A stretch of DNA of 64,000 nucleotides from Macrostomum lignano (taxonomy: Eukaryota). The stretch spans positions 124,001 to 188,000 of the forward strand of contig NIVC01000268.1 of assembly GCA_002269645.1 (NCBI GenBank), given 5' to 3'. The translations under genes and the position numbers were made by a program. Under the pieces are notes generated by a model. It ran no database searches and was not told the origin of the DNA. It saw only the letters and a program-made list of their open reading frames with translations. Positions 2,131 to 63,295 of this stretch are shown here, in pieces; position 1 is the stretch's first letter; each line of letters opens with the position of its first letter.

Positions 2131-2299
2131 TTTGGCATCTGGATCTAAAAATGAATCCAGCTGTCTATGGTACATATACATTATATATTGTATTGAGTCT
2201 ATCAGTATTCAATGCTCATATTTCAAAACCATGCATGCGCTTATATCTTCTCAAGAACTAACCAATACTTTTATAAACCTGAAAGAATTTTCTTCCAAG

Positions 2300-4567
2300 A
2301 TGTCCGACTCGGCCGATAATGATTTCACTCCGCCCGAGGGCTTCGCCGATATCAGCGGCGACGGCGGCGTCTATAAAAAAGTGCTGACCGAAGGCGTCGG
2401 CGAGGTGACGCCGTCAGTTGAGGACAGCGTGTTTGTGCACTACACCGGCACTCTGTTTGGCGGCGATCGGGACGGCGAGAAATTCGACTCGTCCAGGGAT
2501 CGCAACGAGCCGTTCAGCTTCAAGCTGGGCGCCGGCCAGGTCATCAAAGGCTGGGACGAGGCCGTGAAAACAATGCGCCGAGGCGAGGTGTGCGACATTG
2601 TGCTGAGGTCTGACTACGCCTACGGCAAGTCGGGCAGCGGGGCGAAGATTCCGCCTAATGCGGCGTTGAAATTCAACATCGAACTGATTCGCTGGGAAGG
2701 CGAAGATGTTAGCGAGGCCAAGGATAAAGGCGTTATTAAGCACTGCCTGCGCAAGGGCGAAGGCTACCAGAAGCCTGGCATAGGTGCAATGGTCACCGTT
2801 AATTTGGTTGGCAAGCACGAAGGTCGCGAGTTCGATTCTCGGACGGGAGTCAGCTTCGAAGTTGGTTTAGCCGACGAGGCTGGACTGCCGCAGGGCGTTG
2901 ATTTTGCTGTGAGAAGCATGACTAAAGGCGAGAAGGCGAGTTTCAGCGTGTCTGAGACCTATGCTCAGGCACAGAATGTGCCAGCCAACGCTGCCGTTGT
3001 CTACGAGTTGGAGCTCACTGATTTTGAAAAGATGAAGGAAAGCTGGGAGCTCAACGAAGAAGAAAAAGTTGCCCAGGCCGAACTGCTCAAAGCTAAGGGC
3101 ACAGAGTATTTTAAAAAGTCGAAAATGCGGCCAGCTCTGACTTATTATAATCGCGTTGTCGACTTTCTCAAATGGGACAGCGGCTTCGAGGACAAGCCGG
3201 AAGAGTTGCGCCAGCAGCGGGTCGCTCTGCTTCTGGCGGCCAGGCTCAACTTGAGTCTGGTGCACTTCAAACTCGGCGATCATCGTCAGTGCATTGAGGA
3301 AGCCGACGAAGCCATTAAACTGAATGCTGACGCCGCCAAGGCTTACTTCCGGCGCGGCCAGGCTCGCATGGCAACTCACGACTATGATGAGGCCAGGGAG
3401 GACTTCGAGAAGGTCGCCCAGCTCGAGCCGGGAAATCAGGCGGCTGCCCAGCAGATCGCTTTGGCCAAGCAGCGCATTATTGAGGAGAAGAATAGACAGA
3501 AGAAGACTTTCTATGGCATGTTTGACAAGTTTGCTCAGCACGACAGTGCCGCCCAGGTGAGTTGCAGCTTGATTGATTGATTGCGGGTCTAGGGATAGAC
3601 TGGCTCTCTTTCTCTAGGGATAGAATGGCTCTCTATTTCTCTAGGATTAGAATTATTTTTTATTTCTATAGGGATAGGATGTTTGTCTATTTCTATAGGA
3701 GTATAATTATACTCTATTTCTATACGAGTAGAATGACTCTCTAATTCTCTAGGGATAGAATTATTCTCCTTTTCTATAGGAAAATAGTTATTCTCTGTTT
3801 TATGTATATCTCGATATAACTAGATAGATCAGTTTGGATTGCGTGACTAATTTGATGGGTAATTTTAGCGGAGGCATTGGTAGCTAAGGCACTGCAGGTG
3901 AACTGAATGCTTTCATCCAAAATAAATTTAATAATATGAGAGCAAAGACTGAATGCCTGTCTTTCTCCCAATTATGGCAATTGTGATGAGTCGAAGGCCC
4001 CTCCCATTTCGTTAGCCATTTATAATCGGCCATCGTTGATCTGAATAATTATGGCGGTGCTTTATTAAAGCACTAATTTGCTTAGTTCTATATGGCCTCT
4101 AGTAAATTAAGTGAATAAACAATATAAATAACTGTTTTGCTCAAAATAACAATAATCATAACCATAATAATTATAATAAAATAATTGATTACACCTGCCC
4201 TAATGGGCAGATGTGCAACCGACAGCTCAGCCGCAGCTATTGCGCGGCACATCTGAAGGCTGCGTTACGGCTGTTCAGTCCAAAGACTGGGGGGTCGCCA
4301 CACACCCTTAATTACCATTGGCCTCTTTATCCGTCAGTTAATAGTCTGGCAATGGTCTCTTTATCAGTTAGGTAATAGTCTGGGACTGGCCTCTTTATCA
4401 GTTAGGTAATAGTCGGTCTTTATCTAACGGGTGCACCCCTAATTATTTTCTCACCTCTGACTCGTGTAATTATTTGTATTATTCAGAAATCAGCATCAAA
4501 GCCAGCCGCCGCGGCTGTTGCGGACAACGGCGAAGGCGGCGACAAGCCGGCCCCCACTGAGGCGTGA
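2300..4567 (+). CDS. FKBP4: FKBP52/FKBP59-type peptidyl-prolyl isomerase (2 FKBP domains + TPR + calmodulin-binding tail), ~445 aa; exons 2300-3556 and 4487-4567
   Basis: FK1 motifs VHYTG, FDSSRDR, LGAGQVIKGWD, YAYG, IPP; second FKBP domain; TPR motifs KGTEYFK and KAYFRRG; tail TFYGMFDKF. Canonical phase-0 GT-AG intron. Assignment to FKBP4 versus FKBP5 is not resolvable by eye. Confidence 0.93.
3590..3780. repeat. Degenerate ~27-28-bp tandem repeat in FKBP intron
   Basis: Recurring CTAGGGATAGAAT...CTCTATTTCT units. Confidence 0.8.
4190..4318 (-). mobile_element. 3' fragment of the CORE-like SINE family seen at 32166
   Basis: 4218-4318 matches the reverse complement of about 32305-32410 (GACAGCTCAGCCGCAGCTATTGC...GGTCGCCACACAC); ends in a TTA-rich tail on the minus strand. 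Confidence 0.8.
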
Positions 4568-5745: not shown

Positions 5746-6158
5746 TCCGCCCCAACAGCTCGGCAAATAGCTCGTATGTGTCCTGCATACAGCATTTTGT
5801 AAACTCTCCCTCTCTCAACAGCTAATTGAATCGCTGTTGTACAGCCGTGTGGGTGGCAACAACATTCCGGTTTGGCCATATTGGGCTATGGAGGGAGATT
5901 TCTCCTTCATCTTCCCCCACCAGCCTGCCAATTCTGCGCCTGCTTAGCCGTCATTGGCTGCAGCCGGTTCGTCATCAACCCGTCGCGGGTTGGTTCCGGC
6001 CCAGCTTCTCTTACTTATTTTGGCTCGGGTTCCAAACAGCCCGTCTGCTCACTGCCATTCCTGTAGCTTGGAGTTGGAATCGTTCTTTCTAACCGAGCGG
6101 CTGCGCGACTTGAAGCAAGTGTTTTGAAAAGTCAACTAACAGAGGTAAACTAGTTGCC

Positions 6159-6614
6159 ATGACGACTCGGACAAAGCCAGCTGTTGCTTTCGCATCTGCC
6201 GTCCTGTTCCTTCTGGTGGCGGCTGCTGGATTCTGTTCGGCCGAGGAGACTGGCAGCGATCGTCAGGTTGAAGCCAGCGCTGCCCAGCTCAAGGCTAAGC
6301 GGTTTTACCACGACTCCGACCGCTTCAAGCGATTCTACCACGACTCTGATCGGTTCAAACGTTTCTACATCAATTCCGATCGTTTTAAACGCTTCTATGG
6401 AGGCGACGCCGAGCGTTTTAAAAAGTTCTTTTCTGGCGGCGACCGCTTCAAGAAGTTCTTTTCCGGCGGAGATCGCTTCAAGAAGTTCTTTTCTGGCGGA
6501 GATCGTTTCAAGAAGTTCTTTTCTGGCGGAGATCGCTTCAAGAAGTTCTTCAACGGCGGGGACCGATTCAAGAAGTTCTACAGCGAAGAGTCCGACCGGT
6601 TCAAGCGATCTTAA
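6159..6614 (+). CDS. Neuropeptide precursor, 151 aa: signal peptide + 10 KR/KK-flanked F(Y/F)xxx(D/E)RF peptides
   Basis: Hydrophobic N-terminus (AVAFASAVLFLLVAAAGFCSA). Peptides FYHDSDRF x2, FYINSDRF, FYGGDAERF, FFSGGDRF x4, FFNGGDRF, FYSEESDRF. Repeats differ mainly at synonymous third positions. AATAAA at 6743. Confidence 0.93.
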   Translation: MTTRTKPAVAFASAVLFLLVAAAGFCSAEETGSDRQVEASAAQLKAKRFYHDSDRFKRFYHDSDRFKRFYINSDRFKRFYGGDAERFKKFFSGGDRFKKFFSGGDRFKKFFSGGDRFKKFFSGGDRFKKFFNGGDRFKKFYSEESDRFKRS

Positions 6615-7984
6615 GCTGAACAAGCGAGCGCGCCAGCAGTAATGCGCCGGATAAACATCGACCTAATTGACCTTTGTTTAAAAGATCTTAAAGAACTGTT
6701 TCGATTGCCGCGCGCGCGCTTTGAATATGATAATACCTGGACAATAAAACTAACGCACCGGGCCTGCACTCCTCAAACCGTACTGTTGTTTTACCAGCCC
6801 TTTTCAATCTTATACAGTAGACTACTGCAACTTGTGTCCGCAAGATTATTATTGCAAATGCCGACTGCGCGCCTAAGACCCAGCCCGCAGCAGTTTTAAC
6901 GCACGCTACTACTATCAGCAGCAGAGCAATCGCAGCAGATTTAGAATCGCATTAAAATAATTGGTTAGCAGCAATCGCCAGCAACTTTGCAGCGGATTGC
7001 GTTCGCCAGTAAAAAACAAATACCATTGTTCTCAACAATGCTTGTTTCCGATAGCGTCTTTAATTTCTATTGTCTACTGCGATAAATGTACTTCGTGCGC
7101 CTATTGGCACGAAGTAGCCCATTGAAACATGACGCTGTCGACGCGTGTATCTGCATGCATGAAGCTTTTTTCCACTTTCTACTCAGCTTCTCAGTCTCTG
7201 GAGAGGGGCAATTAACAATTCGTGTCGTTTTATAGAGAAAAAAGCCTGGCATAGCCCCGTCAGTTAGTCAAACAACTAATATAAGGAAGAATGCAAAGTG
7301 ATTCGCCATAGCTGTCTATTAGGTGTCTTGCACTTCTTACCTGTCTGAGGGGTTTGCTAAGCAAGTAGTTGTTGAGCAATGTCATTTGGTGCTCAGGATG
7401 CGTGGCCAGAGTTGGGCACAAGGCGTCCCTCCAAAGACAGGCCTAATGAATAAAAAGGTCCTAAATGGCTACGCCTCTGATGCCAACACAAGTGGCTGCA
7501 CTCTTGCATACTCTTACCATTAACAACTAAAATCAAAGGATGCTATACACTCGCAAGCTGGGCAAAGTTTGCTAGATCCCGGTTTTCGCTACAAAATGCT
7601 TAATCCATTAGCGAATAGGAAGCTTTCAGTTTATAACACTTAATTCCCTTTCCAATGGGATCGCCTTCTGGACTTCTCTTTGTTAGTGAAATGCTACGAG
7701 TACCGGAGACCGGGAACTGTATAGGCATAATTTGAGTTGTATTTTTTCTAGAGCGGATTTCTTTGCACTGAATATGTCAAACCCCAGTTCAGTGCTATGC
7801 AAAAGAGGCAAACTGTATTTTGACCATTGCCGCTCTCCAGCAATTATTTTTGCGAACTTTATTTCGGCAAACTTGTTAGTGCACTTGATTGGAAATTCGA
7901 AAGTCCAGATTCTAGGTGAGGTGCGTTGTCCATGGCTTTTACATGTAAGGTGGTAGCCAAGGGGGGCCGCCCCCCCCCTCAATC

Positions 7985-12300: not shown

Positions 12301-13852
<1,552 letters not shown>

Positions 13853-21465: not shown

Positions 21466-21809
21466 AAATACTAACTGGTGTTAGTGTAAAAGCTTCAGGT
21501 GTTATAAATGAATACTTAGACCCTGACCTAAATAAGTTTGTCAAGTTAAACAAACTCAACATTGTATTCAAATTGTCGGGTTCCACCGATTGTACGAACG
21601 GGCTCTGTTGCAATGAGTTTTATTGAGAAAGATCCGCACTTATCCATTCTGTGTAAAAAATACCTTTTAATTCTCTCTGAAAATTGCTCCCGACTTGTAA
21701 TTTTGAGCTATGCTTCTCAATAGGCAGTATGAATAAAAAGAGCATTTGCTCACGAGAAACTTCTCCGCCTTTTAAATTACCCACTGGTAATGAATCGACA
21801 TCCAGTTAG

Positions 21810-22930
<1,121 letters not shown>

Positions 22931-23121
22931 AGTGGTTATAGCTGCCGAGGTGCACTGCCCCAAGGGCACCCATAGACTACGGCAGATTTTAACTTTCTGA
23001 GACATTAAGCTATGCTTCGCTCCTCGAGAGTGTGATTGATTCGCAAGGTTCAATATAGTTCTATCAAGTAAAGAAAGTCACGTGATGTCGCATTAATTAG
23101 CATAGCAAGCAATCAAATCAA

Positions 23122-29777: not shown

Positions 29778-32700
29778 TCAGACTTCGGCATGCTGAGCAG
29801 CCCTGTCCTTCTGCTGCTGCTGGGGTCTCCTAGGAGTGCCAGGCTTAGTAGGCAGAAACGCCCTATTCAACACAGCCGCCCGTTGTTCCAGCAATTCAAC
29901 AGAGCTGAAATGCGTCAAGAAAGCGCGCGGCACGGCGAAGCCCTGCACTCGCATTAGCTGGCCAAAATCTGGCGCGTCGATTTGGTGCACAGCGGCAAAG
30001 GCGAACCTGCCAATTAGGCCGGTACGAGAGATCATTGGGCCGGAGCTCAAATCGACAAAATTGCCAACGCGATACACGGTTAGAATCTGATCGGGCTTGG
30101 ACTGCAGTATGCTGCGAATTGCTGCCTGTTTTGCTTCGTTATGCTTGAACATCTCCATGACAACGGGGCCGGGCGCGTCCATCGGTTGGAAGGCGTGATC
30201 GGCCGCCATTAGCCGCTCGGCTGCTAGGCTGAGGCCACGCAATTCCGATCGGCTGGGACTCCATGTTAGCGGCTCGCCGCTGCCAGCCCGCGACACCTGT
30301 GGATTTGTTCTTTTATCTTGTCAAGGCTATTTAGGGATTCCCCCATTCTGCCCCGGTTATTGAGGGATTCCCCCGCCATTCTGCCAAGGTTATTGAGGGA
30401 TTTCCCCGCCATTCTGCCCCGGTTATTGAGGGATTCCCCCGCCATTCTGCCAAAGTTATTGAGGGATTCCCCCGCCATTCTGCCCCGGTTATTGAGGGAT
30501 TTCCCCTCATTCTGCCAAGGTTATTGAGGGATTCCCCCGCCATTCTGCCCAGGTGCGTTGAGGGATTCCCCCACCATTCTGCCCAGATCGTTGAGTGATT
30601 CTCCCGCTATTCTGCCCAGGTTGTTGAGGGATTTCACCGCCATTCTGCTCAGGTTACTGGTGGATTCGGAGCCATTCTGCCAAGGATATTGAGGATTCCC
30701 CGCCTTTCTGCCCCTGTTATTGAGATTCACCCGCCATTCTGCTCAGGTTACTGGTGGATTCGGAGCCATTCTGCCAAGGATATTGAGGATTCCCCGCCTT
30801 TCTGCCCCTGTTATTGAGATTCACCCGCCATTCTGCGAAGGTTATTGAGGGATTCCCCTGCCATTCTGTCAAGTTTATTGAGGGATTCCCCACCATTCTG
30901 CCAAGGTTATTGAGGGATTCCCCGCCATTCTGCCCAGGTCGTTGAGGGATTCCCCCACCAGTCTGCCCAGATCGTTGAGTGATTCTCCCGCTATTCTGCC
31001 CAGGTCGTTGAGGGATTTCCCCGTCATTCTGCTCAGGTCATTTAGGGAGTTCCCTAACATTCTGCCCAGGTTATTGAGGGATTCCCCCACCATTCTGCCC
31101 CGGTTATTGGGGGATTCCCAACCATTCTGCCCCGGTTATTAAGAGATTCTCCGCCGGCCACTCTGCGCCGGCAATATAGGGATTCCCCGCTGTTCTGCCC
31201 ATATTAGTTCTGTCAGGGTCGTTTAGGGATTTTCCCACCGGTCTGCCAAGGTCAATTAGGGATTTCCCCGTCTCTGTTAAGGTCATCTGGAGATTTCTCT
31301 GACCTGTATTTGTCAATGTCAGAATAAAAAAAATCTCGGGTTCTCATACCTGACAGTCGTAGACGAAGCTTCCACTTTTGATGTAAGGAATAGGGAAACT
31401 GATCAGCTTGACATTGTAGGCCTCTTTGAAAGCGGTCTCGAATACCGAGCCAATCAGTAGAGAGCCCGATCGCCAAAGCGCTGTGTTGCACAACTTGATA
31501 CCTTTGAAAACAATTTTAATAGCAACGTAAGACGATTTGCTTTTTTCGTTAAGCAAAGTGGCTTTTGGGGTACGAAGAAATTATTCACACAACATATCGG
31601 AAAATTATTTAAAGCATTGTGTTCAACCAATTTCTTAGTATCAGTAAAAACTGATTGATGTTATACAGAAGTGAGAAGAAAATGCATAACATTAACGTCC
31701 TTAATCTTTGTAGCCTAATGGGGGTTGGGAATTGTAGCCTAGTGGGGGATTGTAGCCTAGTGGGTAATTGTAGCCTAGTGGGTAATTGTAGCCTAGTGGG
31801 GAATTGTAGCCTAGTGGGAATAGTAGCCTAGTGGGGAATTGTAGCTTAGTGGGGAATAGTAGCCTAGTGGGGGATTGTAGCTTAGTGGGGAATTGTAGCC
31901 TAGTGGGGAATTGTAGCCTAGTGGGGAATTGTAGCCTAGTGGGGAATTGTAGCCTAGTGGGGAATAGTAGCCTAGTGGGGAATCGTAGCCTAGTGGGGAA
32001 TTGTAGCCTAGTGGGGAATTGTAGCCTAGTGGGGAATTGTAGCCTAGTGGGGAATTGTAGCTTAGTGGGGAATAGTAGCCTAGTGGGGGACTTTAGCCTA
32101 GTGGGGAATAGTAGCCTAGTGGGGAATTGTAGCCTAGTGGGGGATTGTAGCTTAGTGGGGGATTCTAGCCTAGCGGTTAGTGTTGAAATCCCGACCGAAA
32201 GGTCGGGGGTTCGATTCCCGATCCCACTCGGAACAATTTGTGTCCTTGAGCAAGACGCTTAACTCTGCATTGTTTTAGTTCACCCAGCTGTAAAATGGGT
32301 GCCAGCATTAGCTGGGGTAATTGAGGGTGTGTGTGGCGACCCTCCAGTCCTTGGACTGAACAGCCGTACGCAGCCATCAGATGCAATAAGCAATAGCTGC
32401 GGCTGAGCTGTCAGTTTCCCGACCTTTCTACCTTTCTTCATTCTTCCCATATCTCTAAATACACCCCAAATAATATTTACCATCAGCTTCCTCTTTACTG
32501 CCGGGAGTTTTAAAGTTAAGAAACGCCAAGGAACAGCTGGTATTCAATGGCCGATGCATGTCCCAGGCTGTGCTGCCATTAACTATAGCCAGCACCGATT
32601 CCGAGCTCAATTCCTCTGACAGATGCTTAGCAGCGTCTAGTGGAGTTGAGACGCCTTTGTTTAAAAACAGACTATGCGACTGACCGTCTGGTCCAGTATA

Positions 32701-32958
32701 GACAACTTCGATTTTATCAATAGATCGTTTGGATCGTTTTAATTGACGCTCGAACTCTTCGTTAAATATGGCCAGCCGGTGGGCCTGTTGGGCATCCCCA
32801 GAGACTGCGGCTGCACTTGAATCTGTGCTGGACAATGCCGTAGAAGGAGCTTGCATTGAAGAGCTTGCATGATGATCAACGCTCATGGGACTTCTTTGCT
32901 GGTATAGAGCCAGCCGGCACAATGGCCGCAGAGAATGGCGAAATGTAGCCAGAGACAT
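29778..32958 (-). CDS. MRPL39: Mitochondrial ribosomal protein L39 (mL39, ThrRS-like), ~382 aa; exons 32958-32481, 31501-31350, 30296-29778
   Basis: Arg/Ser-rich presequence, TGS-like LNKGVSTPLDAAKHL..AWDMHRPL, ALWRSGSLLIGSVFETAFK..SGSFVYD, VGNFVDLSSGPMISRTGLIGRF..RVQGFAVP. Three canonical exons sum to 1149 nt. Confidence 0.92.
30320..31290. repeat. 32-33-bp minisatellite in MRPL39 intron 2
   Basis: Unit ATTCTGCCCCGGTTATTGAGGGATTCCCCGCC. Confidence 0.93.
31720..32175 (+). repeat. 18-bp minisatellite (AGCCTAGTGGGGAATTGT) running into the A box of the adjacent SINE
   Basis: Each unit contains TAGCCTAGTGG, matching the A-box consensus TRGCNNARYGG. Confidence 0.9.
32166..32410 (+). mobile_element. 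tRNA-headed CORE-like SINE in MRPL39 intron 1
   Basis: A box TAGCCTAGCGG (32166), B box GGTTCGATTCC (32208), CORE-like TGTGTCCTTGAGCAAGACGCTTAAC...CACCCAGCTGTAAAATGGGT; second partial copy at 4190-4318. Confidence 0.85.
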
Positions 32959-37100: not shown

Positions 37101-39120
37101 AGCGGGGCCCGCCTGTGCACAGGCCCCTGCACGCCTGCACTGCATTTTTGAGTCAGAGTGAGTCAGACTGAGTTTTGCCCAGCCAGCCAGTTCGGTCTGA
37201 CTCACACCTCCCTATTCTCTGAAGTATAAAATCTATGCTTAAACAAATATACACAAGATCTTTCGCTCGCTTGCTGCTTTTCAAGCTTCCACTCGCAAGC
37301 CGCTTCAAGACTCAATTTACATGAAGATACTTACATGTATTGTGGAGCCTACTAACAACTCCAAATGAATATAAGACAATTAGTGTGTGAGCTGCCTAGG
37401 ATTCAGCCGACGGATATTACTAATGTATGAAGTCTACATGTATACCATTATGCAATGTATAAAAGTACATATAATTGTCGGAAACGTCGGCCGAAGTAGC
37501 AGATGGCTAGCTGTGGGGCACCCTCCCTGATCACGAGCTGGGTCATCTCATGCAGCTTCCATCTGATGACGCGCGCAGTGCAATTCTCACGTGGAGAGAC
37601 GGAACCCGACACACTGACTGAATGCATGGGAAAAACCTTCCCGATCTGTCTTTTCACCAACCATGCACAATCGGTCTTGCCAAGAAGCGGATGAGTGCGC
37701 GACGATCATCCTCAGTCAGGAAAAGACGCCATGCTGCGTCGAGGAGCTCGATATCTACATATGTAGCTATTTATGATGGCTCACGCCCCACCTCCAGAAT
37801 TTTGCATCCGTTTCAATGTTCTAAAAGACGTGCATAATTTTATATCCATGTGTCGAAAATTACACATGCATGTTTTAACAATTTAATTTTTATCTATCAG
37901 TTTGCAACAAGCAATTAGGAACGGCGCTAGCATATCTTCCAGCTGACGCACCCCCGGAGGATGTCTCAAAAGAATTAGCTAAGTCCGATATAGTATAGGC
38001 GCCGTCCGGTGCTGAAATAGCAGCTTTTGTATCGCCGGTAAATCATATGGTTACGAAACATTATTGCAATTTATCATTGCCACGCATGTCCTGCAGCTCG
38101 CTAGCTATAGCGCGACGCGATATATGGCAGACTCGCTATACAGATATACATGTAGCTACATGTAGCTACACGGTCTTCTAGAACGAATTGTCCTAGCTTG
38201 CTATCACAGCTCTAGCTTAAGCTAGCTGCAGAACTGAATGCCAAAAGTACAAGAGAAGAGACTATATCTAAATTACATGTATGTATATCTCGTCACCCAA
38301 TGTGACAGCAAAGCGCGGCCTCGCTGCAGGCTCTTTTGCCACGCCACTAAGAACTCCCCTAGCCAGTAGCAATGTCAGGTTAAGTGGATCCCAGGGTACG
38401 CAGGTTTAATGCCAGGGAAGGAGTTGGCAGACGTATACATGTACACCCTCGCCAAGAGGGACGGCTCTGGCTCCTCCTGATGGGTCCCGACCCGAATTAG
38501 GCTATCGTAGATGTAAATCCTACTACAAGGAAGGAAGAAACAAATTATCAAGGCATTTTATTAGAAGCTACATAGCTATTTGATACACAACTTGTTGACC
38601 CTTTACACTGCACATATGACTTTAAAAAATAAAATAACCAAATTTTGCGTTAGTATAGTTACTTTTTCAATTATATTTTTTGAACAAATGTAGTGCATGG
38701 AGTAGCTGAAAGAAAAATAAAGCCCAATTGTTTTTATAGCTATTAAACGCAGAACCAATTAATTCTAATAATGAATAATAATTCAATAATAAACTAGTAT
38801 ACCATGTATAGTTTAGACTGGTTAGTGTAGCTATCGATCTTGCCTGCATTAATACGCAAGCTGTCAATGAACTGTATACAAAAGAAAATATCGACCGATG
38901 TAGATTTGATAGACAGATGATACATATAGGTCAATTGGAGATGGCAATTCAGATACGAGTTCGTAACAAACTATTTATAAAAGATAAGTACGAGCGTACT
39001 CGCATGTACAAATTCAGACGACATCTTTTGATTGTAAGGTTCGATCCAATATAAAAAGCTCTAGCTATTGCCGAAAAAAGGATAAGCTAAAATACGCAAA
39101 TCCGCTTCAATGGTGTCGAT

Positions 39121-42100
39121 TCAGGGCTTTAGCCTAGATTCCACAATGGCAGGCACCCGTGGAGCCAGATGGCCGATCCCCGCAGACGCAATGGCGATGC
39201 CAGTCAGAGGCAGCAGGGCCGTCGTCCCACTGAATATGGCAGCAAACAGACCGACTACTGTGGAGACCAGTGAGCTCACGAGACATTTCCATCGCTGGAG
39301 GTACTCATCTTCAGGCATTCCCGTCGTAGCTTTACGGAATACCAGAATAGCAGCTTCCACGGCACTAAAGCCGATGATAAACAAGAGACCCAAACCTTCA
39401 CTCCAGAATGTTTTGCCATCAGGAACAGCTGGGGTGATATCTGCAAAGAACTGAATAACTCGGTTGACTAACTTTGCGAACTTTCCGACGCCCTTGAAGA
39501 ACGACACAGCGAAAGAGGGACAAGCGGATGTCGCCCTCAGCGCCCAGTCGCTGAGCTGAAGACTCGTGAATCGACCGTAGATCAGAAAGTTCACAAAGTG
39601 CTCGCAGTTATTAAAAAACAGTTTGTAGTTCCTTGCGTCTCGACAGTCCGTGAACTTGGCATCAATCTTCTCCCAGTCGAGCTCGGTGTTGTGCACCACC
39701 TTCTTCAGCTGACCCGGTCCAGTCACTCGAAGAAATCCGTTGAACTCGTTGAATCCCATCTCCACATTCTCAGCTGGAGCTTCGTAAGTCACGCCTACAC
39801 CTGTGCACGACTCTGCATCCCATTCGACAAGAATGAAGTGCACCCTGGTCACTTTGCCTTGCACCTTACGATCCAGCACAATGTGATCGAACTGCTTCAG
39901 GCTGGAAGGCGCCACTGCATCCTCAAGAAATATGGACTCCCCAGGTCGTGAGCTAAGTGTGCCAAACTTGTCCAGCTTAGTTACTGCTTTCTTGATACCG
40001 TTCAGTTTTGTTCCAAAAAGCTTTTGAATGTCGCTGAGTCCCTCGTTTCGTCTTTTACACTTCAGCCAGTGGCAGAAGTCGTGGCTGGTGACTTTGCTGC
40101 CACACTTCGCTTCTTTCCCTGTCCAACCATGCATGTCATCGTCCGCGCTCAAGAAGGTGCAGTTAGTGAGCTGATCGATGACTTTGCTGTCGGGCATGAT
40201 TGACTTAGAGAGACTTAAATCATCGTAGTTTACTCTCTGAACTGTCTCCTGCTGACCGATTACCAAATCTTCCTTCCTGACGGTCTTGAACTGGTGGTTG
40301 TTTTCGTACAAGCGAACCTTTACTATGTCGTCGGAATCTTCAAACTTACTGCACTCTCGCATGATCGCATCGTGTGTGTACAAGTTTGGACTCTTGAGAA
40401 ACTTGATGTGACCTCTACCAAAGTTCACCAAGTCCTTTGCACGCTCGATGTCGATGCGGCATTGCTCTCGGTTGCTTCCGTGCTCGATGCTGCACCACTT
40501 GGCAAAGTCACGATCACTGTTCCACAGAAAGTCATGCTCTCGCTCACCAAGTCTTGACAACGCTCTTTCGACGACCTTGTCGGGCGAGTACTTTCTGCTT
40601 GTTTCGACATTGTAGTCGATGAGGTGTACATCCTGCTTGCTTTGCTCATCAATATCAATTTCCATACAATGAGTTTTTAATTGGAACAGTTGGGTTGAGA
40701 CAGAAAGACTCAACTTGAATGACATCAGGTTGCAGACAAGTTTTGTACCGGTATCATTTTCCACAGCTGCACCTTCTTCGCTCATTCTAGGCTGCACTGA
40801 ACCGGTTTCAATACTCGCGTGAACTGTCAAAGCGGTTGGCATCGGAGAGTCTGCCAGATCTTTATCACCTGCATTTGCTGTTCGATTTGGGTTCTCTACA
40901 AGTCGAGCAGTTTTTGTCTCTTCGGAGCTGTCACTTTCAGAAAAAGTTTCTATAACTACTGCATGCTTGAAGAAACCATACTCATTCCGAAGGCTTACCA
41001 CACAGCCTTTCTTTATTTGCTTGACGTCTGTTACCGTTGTGGCTTTGTAGCTGGGCTTCTCACGACCTCCGCCGTACAGCTCACAATCCTGGTGAACTTC
41101 GTTGTGAACGCACAGTGAAATGCGCTTTTCTTGTTTTAGAATACGGCATTTTAGCTCCATCAGTTCGCCGCTGTCGGTGGAATCTGGCCCTGGGCAGTAC
41201 TGCACGGTGCGGACTCGAGTGCCCGACTCAACTGCTCTCACATCAGTGACCACTCGGTACACGCCGTTCAAGTGAATGATGTCACCTGGCTTTGAGAGGC
41301 TAGGATTTTGTTTCCCAGTCAACACTCTAGGTTCACACTTTTTCTCTGGACCTTGCAGAGCAGCTCGTTTCCACTCATCGCCTTGGTGCTCAGTACTCAG
41401 CAGTAGCGAGCAAAACGATAAACTCGACTGCTCGGACACCGGATAAAGAACCCGGTCCAAAAATTGAGTTCGATCACTGAGGTTGATCTCCTTCTGATCC
41501 GGAACTGAAGTCACCCGACTGACGGGCTCTGTGAGCACGTGCTCACACTCGTGAACATATGGAATCCAGGCTGCTTTTCGGGTTACAATTTTAACCAGAT
41601 ACGAATCATCAAGGACCTGTTCCACATCTGTGATCTCTGCGTGAATCTTATCACCCTTACGAACTAAACATTCAATATCGACGTGATCACCGACGTTGAC
41701 AGTGTGGGTGGGATGCTCATTTGATAGGTAGATTGGAACTCGACAGCTCGGACGGTGCGTTGTTGATTCGACTTTGCACCACAAGGCAAACATTGTCGCA
41801 TTGTTGGAGATTCCGTTGTGCTCTTCTTCATTGAGTCTGCTTCGAGCTCTCTGCAGTACTGTCTGAGACGGGTAGCAGCTGGCGGGTGGAAACACATGAA
41901 GCCAACACTTTTCTGTGTTGAGTCTCAGGCTGAATTTCTCTCTGATGATCCTGTTTGGTGTGATCAAGTTCGGCCGACCGTAGTGAATGGCGTCAATTAT
42001 GATTAAGTCGGCCGGGGTGTCCGGCAGAGTCCTGACGCCCTCAACCACAACGAAGTGTAACAGCTTGTAATAGCTGAGCTCGACCACGTCTCCTGGCTTC

Positions 42101-42297
42101 AGCTTGTGCATGTTCTCCAGAGTGAGTCGGACCTTTCCTTCATCCTTGTGCTGGTTGTACAGCTCCTGATCGCCTTCGGTTACTACGTGATATTCGTTGA
42201 GCAGCGTGTTCAGCTCATCTTCAGCTTCATCGACTCCGCTCTGCTGGAGTTGCTCTGGTTGTGATTGACGGGTCTGCCTCTGCAGGCTACTTGCCAT
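39121..42297 (-). CDS. Intronless 1058-aa multi-LRAT (NlpC/P60, PLAAT/HRASLS-like) protein with hydrophobic C-terminus, copy 1
   Basis: Repeated (K/P)GDxV..H(F/A)xV..(T/V)VxxRAxSRL..NxxxxFAxWC modules; last module has YKLFFNNCEHFV (Cys898, codon 39606-39604); C-terminal hydrophobic helices. Confidence 0.88.
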   Translation of the reverse strand: MASSLQRQTRQSQPEQLQQSGVDEAEDELNTLLNEYHVVTEGDQELYNQHKDEGKVRLTLENMHKLKPGDVVELSYYKLLHFVVVEGVRTLPDTPADLIIIDAIHYGRPNLITPNRIIREKFSLRLNTEKCWLHVFPPASCYPSQTVLQRARSRLNEEEHNGISNNATMFALWCKVESTTHRPSCRVPIYLSNEHPTHTVNVGDHVDIECLVRKGDKIHAEITDVEQVLDDSYLVKIVTRKAAWIPYVHECEHVLTEPVSRVTSVPDQKEINLSDRTQFLDRVLYPVSEQSSLSFCSLLLSTEHQGDEWKRAALQGPEKKCEPRVLTGKQNPSLSKPGDIIHLNGVYRVVTDVRAVESGTRVRTVQYCPGPDSTDSGELMELKCRILKQEKRISLCVHNEVHQDCELYGGGREKPSYKATTVTDVKQIKKGCVVSLRNEYGFFKHAVVIETFSESDSSEETKTARLVENPNRTANAGDKDLADSPMPTALTVHASIETGSVQPRMSEEGAAVENDTGTKLVCNLMSFKLSLSVSTQLFQLKTHCMEIDIDEQSKQDVHLIDYNVETSRKYSPDKVVERALSRLGEREHDFLWNSDRDFAKWCSIEHGSNREQCRIDIERAKDLVNFGRGHIKFLKSPNLYTHDAIMRECSKFEDSDDIVKVRLYENNHQFKTVRKEDLVIGQQETVQRVNYDDLSLSKSIMPDSKVIDQLTNCTFLSADDDMHGWTGKEAKCGSKVTSHDFCHWLKCKRRNEGLSDIQKLFGTKLNGIKKAVTKLDKFGTLSSRPGESIFLEDAVAPSSLKQFDHIVLDRKVQGKVTRVHFILVEWDAESCTGVGVTYEAPAENVEMGFNEFNGFLRVTGPGQLKKVVHNTELDWEKIDAKFTDCRDARNYKLFFNNCEHFVNFLIYGRFTSLQLSDWALRATSACPSFAVSFFKGVGKFAKLVNRVIQFFADITPAVPDGKTFWSEGLGLLFIIGFSAVEAAILVFRKATTGMPEDEYLQRWKCLVSSLVSTVVGLFAAIFSGTTALLPLTGIAIASAGIGHLAPRVPAIVESRLKP

Positions 42298-48138: not shown

Positions 48139-50060
48139 TGTAGTGAGTGAAACGAGGCTAGACTGCTTGTTGTAGTCGATAGTTGCCGAAAGCTTGCAGG
48201 CGAGAAAAATAGCGATCAGTATGTTTATTGAATTATTGAGCTGAGTCAGAATGGTGGCTAAAGTCGCACCCTGCACATTTGATATTGTACGCATAAGGGT
48301 TGAGCTAGCAGAGTCACGTGGCGCAGCCGCTAACAACCCCCCCCCCAACACACACGATAGTAGGCGCTGCCTTCTCCCCCAAAGGAATTAAAAAAACTTC
48401 GAACTAAAGAAAATTAACTGTTTACGAAGTACACCGCTTCAGCTTGATCGTTATGTCGGATCAATTACTTAACTCGTATAGCACTTCAGCGTGTCGCGGG
48501 CTGCTCTTGGATGCCGTCTCTGAGCCACAGACTCTGCTTCTTGACTAGCGGTCTGGCTGGCAGACTGACCGGCTGGCTGGCCGGCTGACTGGCCGGCGGA
48601 CTGGTCCGACGGTTCCATCAGAGGCCGCAGCTGGGTCACGTGCCGCATACAAGACTGCTGGCCTCGCCGTAGGATGCAGGTGTCGCCTCGAATCTCCTGC
48701 ACCGTCCATGGCTGAGTTTCGAATGGCAGCTGCGTTTTCTTGCGTGCCTGCTGCTTGCGAAGAACACTCATGCCGGGAACGATGCGGTGCTCCTTTGAGG
48801 CCGTGCGCCTGTCGAACGCACTCTTCATCTGCTGCGTGTACCGCCTGTTCCAGTCCTTCACGGCTTCCTGGCTGACATCAGATGACTTCGGCTGTCTGCT
48901 GGCTCGGATTCCGTCGTTGATCGGCCTGCCCATGAGGAGCTCGGCCGGAGTCTGCCCAGTTGCTCGGTGAGGCGTTGTACGGAACGCCAGAAGCCAGTCG
49001 TCCAGGGCCTCTCTCCAGTTCCGACCTTCAGCGACAGCAGTCTTCACCACCTTCCCGATGCATGCTGTTGACACGCTCGGTGGCTCCGTTGGAGTCCGGA
49101 TGCAGTGGACAGATGAGCCGATGATGAACTCCGTATCCGCTGAGGAAGCTGCGAAAGTTGGCAGAGTTAAAGGGCGGTCCCGTTGTCCGTGATGACCTCA
49201 GCAGAGATGCCGTGCCGACCGAACAGCCGTCTCAGATGCGGTGTCACGTTGCCGGCCGTCGTTGACTGCATGATGTCGACTTCCGGGTACTTGGAGTACA
49301 GGTCCGTGGTGACCAGCAGCATCTGACCTTGCACCGGGCCGTAGAAGTCCATGCCGAGCAGTTGCCAAGGTCCGTCCGGCAACTACGTCGGCTTCAAAGG
49401 CGTCTGGTGCACGTGCGTGGCCGCTGCTTGGCAACCGACACAGCACTTGACGAATACTTCGCAGTCGCTGCGCATCTTTGGCCACCAGACTTTGGTCTGC
49501 AGTCGCTTCAGGGTTCTGTCCGCACCGAGATGTCCCGTATGGGCCAGCTGCAGAATCGGTCTCTGCAGCGACTCGGGGACAACGATGAGATCTCCGCGGA
49601 GCAGAATTCCGTCGCTCTCGGAAAGTTCGCTGCTGCTGGACTTTAGTGCGCGTTGCACCGGGTCGAGCATGTTCCAGCTGCCGGTTCTGATCGCGCTGAG
49701 CGCAGCCTGGATCTCCGTGTCAGTCCTTGAAGAGTCTCGGATCTGCTGAAGGCTGGATTCCTTTTGGCACGGCACCTGCTGACACGGCACTGACGAATGC
49801 TGCATCGATGAACTCGCCGATGTTTGGCCTGGGCTCCGGTAACGGCTGGCGGCTCAGCAGATCAGCCTGATTGGCAGGTCCCGGCCGGTACAACAAAGTG
49901 AAGCGGAGGTGCTGGATGCGGAGGGCCATCCGCTCGATGCGCGGCGGAGGGCGGGACCCCGGTTTGAAGAGCGGCACAAGAGGTCGATGGTCCGTCATGA
50001 CGGTGAAGTTCGGATCGCCTGCCAGATAATGCTCGAACTTCAGGCAGGCGATGGAGACTG
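48139..50060 (-). mobile_element. 3' half of a second Ty3/Gypsy element B (RH end, integrase, PPT, 197-bp 3' LTR at 48335-48139)
   Basis: TVMTDHRPL; IN zinc finger AHTGHLG..WWPKM..CVGCQ; core MDFYGP, DLYSKYPEV, TDNG; poly-G PPT; LTR TGTTA...CTACA with AATAAA; frameshifted. Confidence 0.9.
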
Positions 50061-58144: not shown

Positions 58145-61100
58145 ATGGCAAGTAGCCTGCAGAGGCAGACCCGTCAATCACAACCAGAGCAACTCCAGCA
58201 GAGCGGAGTCGATGAAGCTGAAGATGAGCTGAACACGATGCTCGACGAATATCACGTGGTAACCGAAAGCGATCAGGAGCTCTACAACCAGCACAAGGAT
58301 GAAGGAAAGGTCCGACTCACTCAGGAGAACATGGACAAGCTGAAGCCAGGAGACGTGGTCGAGCTCAGCTATTACAAGCAGGTGCACTTCGTTGTGGTTG
58401 AGGGCGTCAGGACTCAATCTAACACACCAGCCGACTTTATCATAATCGACGTCATTCACTATGGTCGATCGAACTTAATCACACCGAACAGGATAATCAG
58501 ACAGAAATTCAGCCTGAGACTAAACACAGAAAAGTGCTGGCTTCAAGTGTTTCCGCCCGTTAGCTGCTACCCGTCTCAGACAGTGCTGCAGAGAGCTCGA
58601 AGCAGACTCAATGAAGAAGAGCACAACGGAATCTCCAACAATGCGAAAATGTTTGCCTTGTGGTGCAAGGTCGAATCAACGACTCACCGTCCGAGCTGTC
58701 AGGCTCCAATCTACCTGTCGAATGAGCACCCAACCCACACTGTCAAAGAAGGTGATCACATCGAAATCAAATGTCCATTCGGTAAAGTTCATGCAGAGAT
58801 CACAGATGTGGAACAGGTCCTTGATGATTCGTATCTGGTTACAATTGTAACCCGAAAAGCAGCCTGGATTCCATATGTTCACGAGTGTGAGCACGTGCTC
58901 ACAGAGCCCGTCAGTCGGGTGACTTCAGTTCCGGATCAGAAGGAGATCAACCTCAGTGATCGAACTCAATTTTTGGACCGGGTTCTTTATCCGGTGTCCG
59001 AGCAGTCGAGTTTATCGTTTTGCTCGCTACTGCTGAGTACTGAGCACCAAGGCGATGAGTGGAAACGAGCTGCTCTGCAAGGTCCAGAGAAAAAGTGTGA
59101 ACCCAAAGTGTTGCCTCGGAAACAAAATCCTAGCCTCTTAAAGCCAGGTGATATCATTCACTTGAACGGCGTGTACCGAGTGGTCACTGATGTGAGAGCA
59201 GTTGAGTCGGGCACTCGAGTCCGCACCGTGCAGTACTGCCCAGGGCCAGATTCCACCGACAGCGGCGAACTGATGGAGCTAAAATGCCGTATTCTAAAAC
59301 AAGAAAAGCGCATTTCACTGTGCGTTCACAACGAAGTTCACCAGGATTGTGAGCTGTACGGCGGAGGTCGTGAGAAGCCCAGCTACAAAGCCACAAGGGT
59401 TACAGACATTAAGCAAATAAAGAAAGGCCGCGTGATAAGCTTTTGGAATAAGTATGGTTTCTTCAAACATACAATAGTTATAGAAACTTTTTCTGAAAGT
59501 GACAGCGCTAAAGAGGCAAAAACTGCTCGACTTGTAGAGAACCCAAATCGAAGACCAAACGCAGGTTTTAAAGATTTGGCAGAGTCTCCGATGCCAACCG
59601 TTTTCACAGATCAAGCGAGTATTGAAAGCGGTGCAGAGAAGGCTAAGAGTTTTCAAGAAGGGGCGGCTATAGAAAATGTTACCGGTACAAAACTTGTCTG
59701 CAAATTGATGTCATTCGTGTTGAGTCCTTCTGTCTCAACCCAGCAATTTCAATTAAAAACTCATTGTATGGAAATTGATATTGATGAACAAAGTAAGCAG
59801 CATGTACACCTCATCGATTACAATGTCGAAGCAAGCAGAAAGTACTCGCCCGACAAGGTCGTCGAAAGAGCATTGTCAAGACTTGGTGAGCGAGAGCACG
59901 ACTTTCTGTGGAACAGTGATCGTGACTTCGCCAGGTGGTGCAGCATTGAGCACGGAAGCAACCGAGAGCAATGCCGCATCGACATCGAGCGTGCAAAGGA
60001 CTTGGTGAACTTTGGTAGAGGTCACATCAAGTTTCTCAAGAGTCCAAACTTTTATACACACGATGCGATCATGCGAGAGTGCAGTACGTTTGAAGATTCC
60101 AACGACATAGTAAAGGTTCGCTTGTACGAGAACAACCACCAGTTCAAGACCGTCAGGAAGGAAGTCTTGGTCATCAGTCAGCAGGAGACAGTTCAGAGAG
60201 TAAACTACGATGGTTTCAGTCCCTCTGAGTCAGTCATACCCGACAGCGAAGTAATTGATCAGCTCACGGACTGCACTTTCTTGAGCGCGGACGATGACAT
60301 GCGCGGTTGGACAGGGAAGGAAAAGAAGTGTGGCAGCAAAGTCACCAGCCACGACTTCTGCCACTGGCTGAAGTGCAAAAGACGAAACGAGGGACTCAGC
60401 GACATTCGAAAGCTCTTTGGAACAAAACTGAAGAGTATCAAGAAAGCTGTGACTAAGCTGGACAAGTTTGGCACACTTAGCTCGCGACCTGGGGAGTCCA
60501 TATTTCTTGAGGATGCAGTGGCGCCTTCCAGCCTGAAGCAGTTCGATCACATTGTGCTATATCGTAAGGTGCAAGGCAAAGTGACCAGAGTGCACTTCAT
60601 TCTTGTCGAGTGGGATGCAGAGTCGTGCACAGGTGTAGGCGTGACTTACGAAGCTCCAGCTGAGAATGTGGAGATGGGAATCAACGAGTTCAACGGATTT
60701 CTTCGAGTGACTGGACCGGGTCAGCTGAAGAAGGTGGTGCACAACACCGAGCTCGACTGGGAAAAGATTGATGCGAAGTTCAAGGACTGTCAAGGCGCAA
60801 GGAACTACAAGCTGCTGTTTAATAACTGCGAGCACTTTGTGAACTTTCTGATCTACGGTCGATTCACGAGTCTTCAGCTCAGCGACTGGGCGCTGACGCC
60901 GACATCCGCTTTTAAGGGCGTCAGAAAGTTCGCAAAGTTAGTCAACCGAGTTATTCAGTTCTTTGCAGACATTACCCAGCCGTTCCTGATGGCAAAACAT
61001 TCTGGTGTGAAGGTTTGGGTTTCGTTTTTATCATTGGCTTCAGCGTCGTGGAAGCTTCTGTTCTGCTATTCCGCAAAGCTACGACGGGAATGCCTGAAGA

Positions 61101-61287
61101 TGAGTACCGCCAGCGATGGAAATGTCTCCTGAGCTCACTGGTCTCCAAAGTGGGGGGTCTGTTGGCTGCCATTGGCATTGGGACGACAGCCGTGCTGCCT
61201 CTGACTGGCATCGCCATTGCGTCTTCGGGGATCGGCCATCTGGCGCCACGGATACCAACCATCTTGGAAACCGGGAGGAAGCCCTGA
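58145..61287 (+). CDS. Multi-LRAT protein copy 2; ~1047 aa if the 1-bp deletion at 60975-60977 is corrected, otherwise 995 aa with an altered C-terminus
   Basis: Colinear paralog of 39121-42297; NNCEHF intact (Cys codon 60827-60829); homologous C-terminus continues in the +1 frame to TGA at 61287. Confidence 0.85.
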
Positions 61288-63295
61288 AGCCCTGTCCACC
61301 AACAAATGTTCGAGTACATTTAGTCTCTGCAAAATGGCAAGACAAAACTGACAAGTGAAAAGCCCATTTTATGCTTTTAATATAAGTAAACAATGAATTT
61401 AAGTATTGAAGCGTAAGAATTATTTGAATACCTTTTCAACTCGATTGACCGTCAAAAGTGAGTTCAAAAAAATCGATAGGCATTCTCAATTTGATTCTCG
61501 AGCGCTACCAGGGTTCGAAAAGCTGGAGCATCACGTCTAGTGTCTATAGGCTAGAGTAAGAAAAAGTTAGCTATACTTCTGTTTTAACGAAGTAAGTGAA
61601 ATTTGTCCGTTGAGATACAGGTGTACGCGTGTCGCCATGCTCAGTGAGTGAAATTCATCATCACACACGGCAGACGCTCAGAATTTGACATCTGGAGTGC
61701 AAAAAATAGTTTCCCTATATAGCTATGACAAACAACTGAGCTGTCACAAGTGAACTGTGCTCATGTCTTCCTCATGTCTTACTCATGTCTTCCTGACGGC
61801 CCTCTTTTCTGCTCCTTTTGCAATCCTCCTTATCCTTTTTCATTTATAATAGCTCTACACGTTGATGGCGCGGCAATATATACTCTGATAATCGAATTTC
61901 ACTCACTTCGAAGTCTAATTCGAACTCACTTTTGACGAATTCGAAATTAAAAGGGTAGCATTATTTCAGAGCTTTTCGTTTGTCAAGATGCTACTTATTA
62001 AAATGTACATACGCTGGTATACATTATGCTATCGTTTATCATATTCACAGTTGGTTTTATTTTAATAACGAGCTCGTAACAATATAATTTTAACCAGAAT
62101 TGTCTCCGGTATAACGCTTTAAAAGATTTCTTTTAACCTATTCTTACACTATAGTTAAAGTATAAATCTTTTTTAGTCTTTTAGTTGTTTGATTCTTATT
62201 TTACACGTAAAAATAAACCAGCTTCTTCACAATGAGCCAGAAATTTTGTTCTTCGTTTTTTGCTTTCAATCAGTCACCAGGCAACTACTGCATGGACTCT
62301 TTCGGATACTGCTAATACTGCGATCTTACGTAGCAAAGATTACGCTCGTACTCGTACATTTAGGATCTAATTATCATTTCGACGCTCAAAGTTAAGCCCT
62401 TCGGATTAACAATATGCGGATACACTCAGCAACGTGTTAAAGTTGCCATCCCGAAGGCAGATGTTCATTATTGGGACTGGAACTGCGCGTGGTAGCTTTA
62501 TTCCAACTCAATTAGGCCATAACTCTCCATTCTATCAATAGCTCTCCTCACCAGTACAGCCTAAGCACACAGGGCCTTGTGACGCAAATCGCATTACCCT
62601 GAGATCACTTGGGTGGAAACTTTAACAGCTGTTGCTGAGTGTAAATAATTCAATAGTAATTAGCGAGAGAGAGGCCTCGTCCAACTTTGAGCCACATCGG
62701 CAACTCATAATACGATTGTATACCTATCAGGCCGTGTAATTTGGCAAAATCGTCAGATCAATTTAATATTACCAACAATTTATTAATGATGGAATGAGCA
62801 AAGTGGCAGATAGATGATTAAGGTCACGTGATGACAATTGCTACATACACGAAAGCTTAATTAGGGGGAACCAGCTATAGACGGGGCAAAGACAAAGGGA
62901 AGCGAACAGTGTGCATGTTGCTAGTGCTCGTACATGATATCAGTGGACCCACGCTACCTACGAGTTTGCTTGCAAGCTCTTCCTCGCGGTGTCTCATGCT
63001 CGAGGGCGTAGTAACCAGGATCGACGGAAGCGAATGCCGTTTTGGGAAAACTTAAAGCGGACTAGCTGCGCCAATTTGCATCAAATATAGAGGTTGAGAT
63101 TGGACAGTTCTGCTTTTATTACATGAACATTTTATCACATCGATTTTAGAATTTAATGCAGTTTCTGTCAAAATGACAGCTCAGCTTTCTGAATGTTTAT
63201 TAAGTATTTATTTTTATCTTCACGAATTGTCAGAGATTAGTTGTAATATTTGAGATGTGCTTCTTTAAGTAGCTATGCTTCTTTTTGAAGCGTGA

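Follow-up and report, generated by a model that had tools for sequence, protein, structure and literature searches.

A probable precursor of multiple non-amidated Arg-Phe peptides in the flatworm Macrostomum lignano

An open reading frame at positions 6159..6614 of a 64,000-nucleotide stretch of the Macrostomum lignano genome (the window; assembly GCA_002269645.1, Mlig_3_7, contig NIVC01000268.1, positions 124,001 to 188,000 of the forward strand) raises the question of whether a short tandem array is a gene and, if so, what kind of product it encodes. The first-pass annotation described a precursor with ten units ending in (D/E)RF, each standing directly before KR or KK with no intervening Gly, and translation of 6159..6614 agrees with that description exactly. 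Tandem repeats with periods of 18-60 nt form at least 15 arrays in the window, several of which yield long spurious open reading frames, and the main null hypothesis is therefore a minisatellite that is open by chance. The features of the locus are as follows.

5901..6158 (+): upstream region, putative promoter and 5' UTR, invariant between homeologs
6159..6614 (+): precursor open reading frame, single exon, ATG to TAA, 151 aa plus stop
6159..6242 (+): signal-peptide-like segment MTTRTKPAVAFASAVLFLLVAAAGFCSA (from the hydropathy profile; predicted cleavage is rule-based)
6243..6302 (+): acidic spacer EETGSDRQVEASAAQLKA with the first KR site at its end (from the translation)
6303..6392 (+): units 1-3, FYHDSDRF-KR, FYHDSDRF-KR and FYINSDRF-KR
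6393..6425 (+): unit 4, FYGGDAERF-KK, 33 nt, the sole ERF unit
6426..6545 (+): units 5-8, four copies of FFSGGDRF-KK
6546..6575 (+): unit 9, FFNGGDRF-KK, where copy number differs from the homeolog
6576..6614 (+): unit 10, FYSEESDRF-KR, then a C-terminal Ser and the stop codon
6743..6748 (+): putative AATAAA polyadenylation signal, 129 nt 3' of the stop codon, present in the homeolog too

The reading frame starts at the first ATG downstream of an in-frame stop codon. Its leader, MTTRTKPAVAFASAVLFLLVAAAGFCSA, opens with an n-region containing Arg/Lys, continues into a hydrophobic core of 18 residues and has small residues at -3/-1, with EE behind them; hydropathy on the Kyte-Doolittle scale reaches its maximum of 3.1 over residues 8-20 and is below zero from residue 24 on. 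By this n/h/c organisation and hydropathy the leader is classed, under a rule-based call, as an N-terminal signal peptide, with a predicted signal peptidase cut after about Ala28. The array behind it has a 30-nt periodicity that is recovered by TRF; 30- and 33-nt units alternate with the frame intact, and the ATG, leader and stop codon bound the array exactly. The units share the consensus F[FY]x3-5[DE]RF (DRF in nine of the ten, ERF in one) and are followed at once by a basic pair, KR in four cases and KK in six. Arg-Phe is C-terminal in all ten units of the window copy and in all 11 units of its homeolog, and a Gly amidation donor is present in none of either set, RF abutting KR or KK throughout. 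The pattern [DE]RF[KR][KR] occurs 10 times in 300 nt, as against 0.36 occurrences expected from shuffles per 64-kb six-frame translation, and it was found nowhere else in the six-frame translation of the 64-kb window.

Codon differences between units that encode the same peptide indicate which frame, if any, has been under selection. Between the two FYHDSDRF units 6 of 10 codons differ, all silently, and the four FFSGGDRF units have four variable columns, all of them third codon positions and all silent. Taken together, 10 of 10 variable sites among identical-peptide units and 18 of 18 pairwise codon differences are silent in the + frame. Five other arrays of the window, with periods that are multiples of 3, served as controls, and in these the silent fraction is at most 0.36 in any open frame. 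The paracopies between the dibasic sites are thus under purifying selection. Two further open reading frames overlap the precursor: an antisense frame of 157 aa with ELLEAISARK-type repeats (6150..6623, -), which spans it entirely, and a +2-frame of 152 aa (6184..6642, +). Each was considered as the true gene and rejected as a by-product of the repeat: the count of silent changes is 0 out of 18 pairwise codon differences in both. A single antisense frame is likewise silent across the FF block and is interrupted by stop codons elsewhere.

A collinear homeologous locus, about 92-96% identical overall, is located on NIVC01000362.1 (L003). Its open reading frame (L003 15120..15605) has 161 codons and 11 units; FLNGGDRF-KK and FFDGGDRF-KK stand in place of FFNGGDRF-KK, a clean in-frame difference of 30 nt. 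Between the homeologs the open reading frame differs by 0.88%, that is by four substitutions, of which two are silent, one is F11V in the signal peptide and one is an F/L change in unit 9. The 258 aligned nucleotides immediately upstream (5901..6158) carry 0 substitutions against about 6.7 expected, and the surrounding flanks have 1.5-3.75% substitutions (about 2.6%), so that the open reading frame and the 258 nt upstream of it are the most conserved part of the neighbourhood in this comparison. The upstream identity may mark either a candidate promoter and 5' UTR under constraint or a local gene-conversion tract, and gene conversion could be partly responsible for the low divergence between the homeologs in general. 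The block of four FFSGGDRF units is base-for-base identical in both homeologs and its units differ mutually at 1-3 silent sites, which places the FFSGGDRF expansion before the homeolog split. The first-pass annotation had proposed a recent 30-bp expansion of FFSGGDRF; the 30-nt period is borne out and the recency is not, given that all four units are shared. Only the gain or loss of one unit beside FFNGGDRF is younger than the split.

At the homeolog a gene has been called, in an annotation whose only sources are RNA-seq assemblies, de novo transcripts mapped with BLAT, and TransDecoder; this model is indirect evidence that the gene is transcribed. The window copy has no gene model in the Mlig_3_7 annotation. 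The homeolog gene is recorded with a 151-aa product from its 161-codon locus, which implies a modelled 30-nt 'intron' within the repeats, and we infer that the model is a 10-unit transcript laid over the 11-unit copy. The missing model in the window and the model at the homeolog both look like annotation artefacts of repeat and homeolog multi-mapping. The comparison shows one homeolog to be unannotated and the other probably to be mis-modelled.

The array could still be viewed as a minisatellite that happens to be open in several frames, as might be expected from the other arrays in the window and their spurious reading frames, from its openness on both strands and from the lack of annotation for the window copy. 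However, silent changes are complete in one frame only, unlike in the control arrays, the start codon, hydrophobic leader and stop codon enclose the in-frame 30- and 33-nt units exactly, the homeolog differs by precisely one 30-nt unit, and a gene model stands at the homeolog in a transcript-derived annotation. A chance-open minisatellite is consequently so improbable that it can be regarded as effectively refuted already. The array is a real, selected coding gene and not one more minisatellite of the window.

Several other features of the window were recorded. Upstream of the precursor lies a single-exon FKBP4/FKBP59-like gene (2240..3580, +) that encodes 446 aa with two FKBP_C domains and TPR; outside M. 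lignano its nearest relative shows 71% identity (Logan run SRR30276804), and no named animal orthologue exceeds 47%. A (CTAA)n array of ~217 copies (12428..13294) and an (AGTT)n array of ~282 copies (21804..22933) are reverse complements of one another, with 88-89% identity in inverted orientation, and flank an 8.5-kb segment rich in minisatellites. Open reading frames with a tRNA_SAD fragment and a TGS domain (29778..30296, -, and 32455..32958, -) appear to be exons of a single MRPL39/threonyl-tRNA-synthetase-like gene, with minisatellite-filled introns between the exons. Two inverted single-exon paralogues of ~3.2 kb (39120..42297, -, and 58145..61288, +) are 92% identical and encode ~1000-aa proteins with a C-terminal LRAT/NlpC-P60-type domain; the open reading frame of the second is the shorter (995 vs 1058 aa), and the DNA similarity runs ~150 nt further. 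Between these paralogues are GC-rich (55-58%) retroelement remnants (48469..49805, -), in which one open reading frame encodes an Integrase_H2C2 zinc-binding domain (E=1e-18) and the neighbouring open reading frame is integrase-like. Rfam and tRNA scans of the window found nothing.

Relatives of the precursor were sought among about 15 billion predicted proteins in total, as well as in Pfam and in metagenomes. A word-indexed search of 5.8 billion proteins returned 11 candidates, none of them significant, and an exhaustive phmmer search against 1.84 billion representatives returned 36 matches, none of which contains the motif. The 36 matches were rejected as relatives; they are unrelated 10-residue tandem repeats (bacterial SISGGDR, translated satellites) that reflect artefacts of period and composition. 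An unrelated 144-aa protein among the phmmer matches (P0153) has six FSEFIGG-K(K/R)R units and, as recorded, no apparent signal peptide; it resembles a multi-copy precursor of amidated peptides (FSEFIGamide type) and was matched by repeat period and composition only. Pfam holds no family for the precursor at E<=0.01 or at E<=10, PDB sequences include no meaningful relative of it, and a scan of JGI metagenomes yielded 545 pattern matches of which 0 were confirmed. Across the protein libraries and metagenomes, no orthologue was found outside M. lignano, and the conservation observed is that within a recent polyploid pair. An exact look-up found no record of the 151-aa window protein, and ten guessed versions of the annotated 151-aa product of the homeolog were likewise not on record in the protein collection. 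The homeolog scores E=7e-101 in a local phmmer comparison at database scale, yet its annotated product was returned by neither large protein search. Since this annotated product is missing from the collections, absence is no more than moderately supported by the empty searches; some small repetitive proteins have evidently escaped the collections, and negatives for genes of this sort need to be read with caution. FFSGGDRF and fragments of the motif are also absent from the searchable literature, with an earlier description in McVeigh 2009 or Koziol 2016 being possible; the former is said to have mined M. lignano ESTs. The exact motif was not recognised in the first-pass annotation, and its absence from Pfam, from the protein collections and from the searchable literature is in accord with this.

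The catalogue of planarian and schistosome peptides contains no [DE]RF unit before a dibasic site but holds the nearest analogues (Collins et al. 2010, PMC2953531). In Schmidtea, RF stands directly before a basic pair, with no Gly between, in two prohormones only, SPP-12 and PPP-1. MS/MS of sexual and asexual Schmidtea yielded the sequence of the SPP-12 peptide, KR.NYMDFFGLNGDMQRF.KK, which was classed as a 'miscellaneous non-amidated peptide'; spp-12 is CNS-enriched at the level of both mRNA and peptide, with localisation to the cephalic ganglia (Collins et al. 2010, PMC2953531; Ong et al. 2016, PMC4825013). The PPP-1 peptides YRVSSSDLRRF.KK and KK.YSYYDSIGSGLL were detected by MS in Schmidtea (Collins et al. 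2010, PMC2953531). Cleavage at RF|KK, cleavage after KK and free-acid RF peptides are thereby established in a flatworm. SPP-12 resembles the M. lignano units in its free-acid Arg-Phe end followed by KK without Gly, and its core F-F..N-G-D..R-F-K-K is collinear with FFNGGDRF-KK, although the alignment needs two 2-residue insertions. It is present as one 15-residue copy in a 70-aa precursor, whereas the M. lignano precursor has ten 8-9-mers in 151 aa. When the RF-KK ending used for its selection is set aside, the similarity of the SPP-12 core is not significant (p=0.11-0.48 by permutation), and that of the PPP-1 N-terminal peptide gives p=0.09-0.37.

The pedal-peptide-like Schmidtea prohormones PPP-1 and PPP-2 (pedal peptide/orcokinin type, the group to which the first-pass annotation had pointed) offer a second comparison, being precursors of multi-copy non-amidated peptides between dibasic sites, a layout that the M. 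lignano precursor shares. They are also alike in having, close to the N-terminus, two aromatic residues and then Asp, as well as Gly/Ser/Asp cores. The PPP-1 N-terminal peptide (D)FYRVSSSDLRRF, released at RF|KK according to MS, resembles FYSEESDRF-KR of M. lignano, and the ppp-2 units Y-F-D-(KIG)-S-D-L-L align with F-Y-H-D-S-D-R-F. The PPP units are 11-12 residues long and end in I-G-x-x-L-L, whereas those of M. lignano have 8-9 residues and end in [DE]RF. More broadly, the M. lignano units do not fit the pattern of pedal peptides and orcokinins as a whole (at least 11 residues, with an aromatic-Asp start and an I-G-x-x-L-L or G-F end), and none of them contains IG..LL. The similarity to the whole ppp-2 precursor is marginal, with z=3.5 against a naive shuffle and p=0.022 and 0.084 in repeat-preserving permutations, values that are uncorrected for four comparators; the whole ppp-1 precursor shows no similarity signal in repeat-preserving permutation (p=0.44 and 0.32). 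On these comparisons, homology cannot be demonstrated with SPP-12, FMRFamide-like precursors or pedal peptides.

The secretory multi-copy precursor with non-amidatable products proposed in the first-pass annotation is supported at the level of sequence. The gene is probably, though far from certainly, a lineage-restricted single-exon gene of M. lignano for a secretory multi-copy prohormone of free-acid peptides, which would most likely be neuropeptides or hormones. What is seen directly, and forms the basis of this proposal, is the open reading frame with its architecture, the purifying selection that acts on the peptide frame, the homeolog's conservation of the gene and the gene model there; signal peptide cleavage, proteolytic processing, the expressing cell type and the receptor are its predicted parts. 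The signal peptide would be removed after about Ala28, a convertase would cut the eleven dibasic sites and a carboxypeptidase would trim the exposed Lys/Arg. Ten peptides of 8-9 residues with a free carboxylate would be released: FFSGGDRF (four copies), FYHDSDRF (two copies), FYINSDRF, FYGGDAERF, FFNGGDRF and FYSEESDRF. None of the ten could be amidated, there being no Gly donor. Their calculated free-acid [M+H]+ values are 932.426 (FFSGGDRF), 959.437, 1061.469, 1061.505, 1086.464 and 1179.495, and they are predicted to be neutral to anionic (charge -0.2 to -2.2). A receptor would read the conserved aromatic N-terminus together with the acidic-Arg-Phe-COOH end. Arg occupies P4 of every post-peptide site (R-F-K-K/R), so the conserved Arg may serve cleavage in addition to receptor recognition. 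A PC2 homologue of M. lignano (RNA815_2403.2) is neurally expressed and its knock-down is lethal. KK makes up 6 of the 11 dibasic sites and, as the weaker convertase site, counts against prohormone processing.

Furin-type processing, in secretory cells that are not neural, would suit the context of the cleavage sites as well, and this makes a gland-derived peptide the main rival. The same precursor and processing would then serve glands (prostate/seminal fluid, pharyngeal, adhesive or epidermal), and the peptides, released to the outside or passed to a mating partner, would be pheromones, allohormones or defence peptides. The furin-type consensus R-x-K/R-R is used in constitutive secretion, and Arg at P4 throughout, with R-F-K-R at the four KR sites, fits it; moreover, a lineage-restricted gene without detectable orthologues and with copy-number variation is common among reproductive and secreted effector genes, and planarian prohormones are expressed outside the CNS too. 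Antimicrobial peptides are typically cationic, however, unlike these; spp-12, the nearest analogue described, is CNS-enriched; and the strict conservation of the peptides across paracopies and homeologs contrasts with the rapid evolution of reproductive proteins. A glandular role is a serious possibility, albeit on the unlikely side. It is considerably harder to accept that the product is a small secreted repetitive protein that stays intact as structural, adhesive or coacervating material with its dibasic pairs uncut. Its 10-residue repeats of F/Y, G, K, R and D do recall marine adhesive proteins, and KK at six sites would suit such a protein, but the invariant ends and dibasic pairs around a variable core of 3-5 residues follow the pattern of peptide paracopies, the flanking sites are kept while unit length varies between 8 and 9 residues, cleavage at KK and at RF|KK is demonstrated in flatworm prohormones, and 123 mature residues are very few for a structural protein. 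An intact repetitive protein is for these reasons very improbable.

A different question is where such a prohormone came from, and the first-pass annotation had suggested an RFamide precursor that lost amidation. In a degenerate FLP gene of this kind, which could coexist with the prohormone reading, a founder RFamide unit would have lost its Gly before the array expanded. Flatworm FLP precursors (YIRFamide in Smed spp-11, SVFRFamide-type in npp-4) likewise have Arg-Phe ends in several KR-flanked copies, and among acoels the MR(F) peptides vary by species between amidated and non-amidated forms (PMC6188537). In FLPs, though, every unit has a Gly ahead of its basic pair and is amidated; Gly is retained in no unit of either M. 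lignano homeolog. Alignment to Smed npp-4 and spp-11 falls below shuffled controls (Smith-Waterman, z<0), the Pfam FARP profile is unmatched even at E<=10, and the residue before RF is acidic where flatworm FLPs have a hydrophobic one. The suggestion of lost amidation is thus not supported, for want of FLP similarity or a FARP match; in the comparisons made here nothing appears to favour an FLP derivation beyond the shared RF, and we consider it improbable.

The prohormone proposed here has counterparts in kind outside the flatworms. Clade-restricted multi-copy peptides (MCPs) of Xenacoelomorpha, some of them non-amidated (AWDF, LWDY, MxGFG, SSxxxF), come from genes of the same kind, each restricted to a taxon and coding for a precursor with many short paracopies (Thiel et al. 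2018, PMC6188537). They belong to another phylum and have other motifs, and the likeness is one of kind and not of ancestry. Free-acid Arg-Phe ends can be bioactive, as in Met-enkephalin-Arg-Phe, the C-terminal heptapeptide of proenkephalin. This is a vertebrate opioid with an N-terminal Tyr-Gly-Gly-Phe and provides an analogy only; the 'YGG' of FYGGDAERF, in contrast, is not N-terminal. The new peptide family put forward in the first-pass annotation therefore stands as regards its exact motif, which is absent from the sources searched, but its novelty of kind was overstated in view of SPP-12, PPP-1 and the acoel MR(F) peptides. The M. lignano gene is plausibly a new lineage-specific signalling-peptide gene, its kind having been described before in other flatworms.

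M. lignano serves as a transgenic flatworm model that is competent to regenerate, and the catalogue of its peptide signalling is poor. Searches for flatworm peptides have reportedly been built around amidation motifs so far, and genes such as this one would escape them. The gene adds a candidate peptide family with a defined list of products and exact masses, and it extends the small set of flatworm non-amidated peptides that end in RF (SPP-12 and the PPP-1 N-terminal peptide). General principles are unchanged, as lineage-restricted multi-copy precursors are common, non-amidated ones included. A stronger claim, that F[FY]x3-5[DE]RF-OH peptides form an undescribed macrostomid neuropeptide family with its own receptor, linked to SPP-12/PPP-type peptides or to FLPs that had lost amidation, is doubtful at present. 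If a new family with its own receptor did prove to exist, M. lignano would provide a natural system for studying how a receptor reads Arg-Phe-COOH as opposed to Arg-Phe-NH2.
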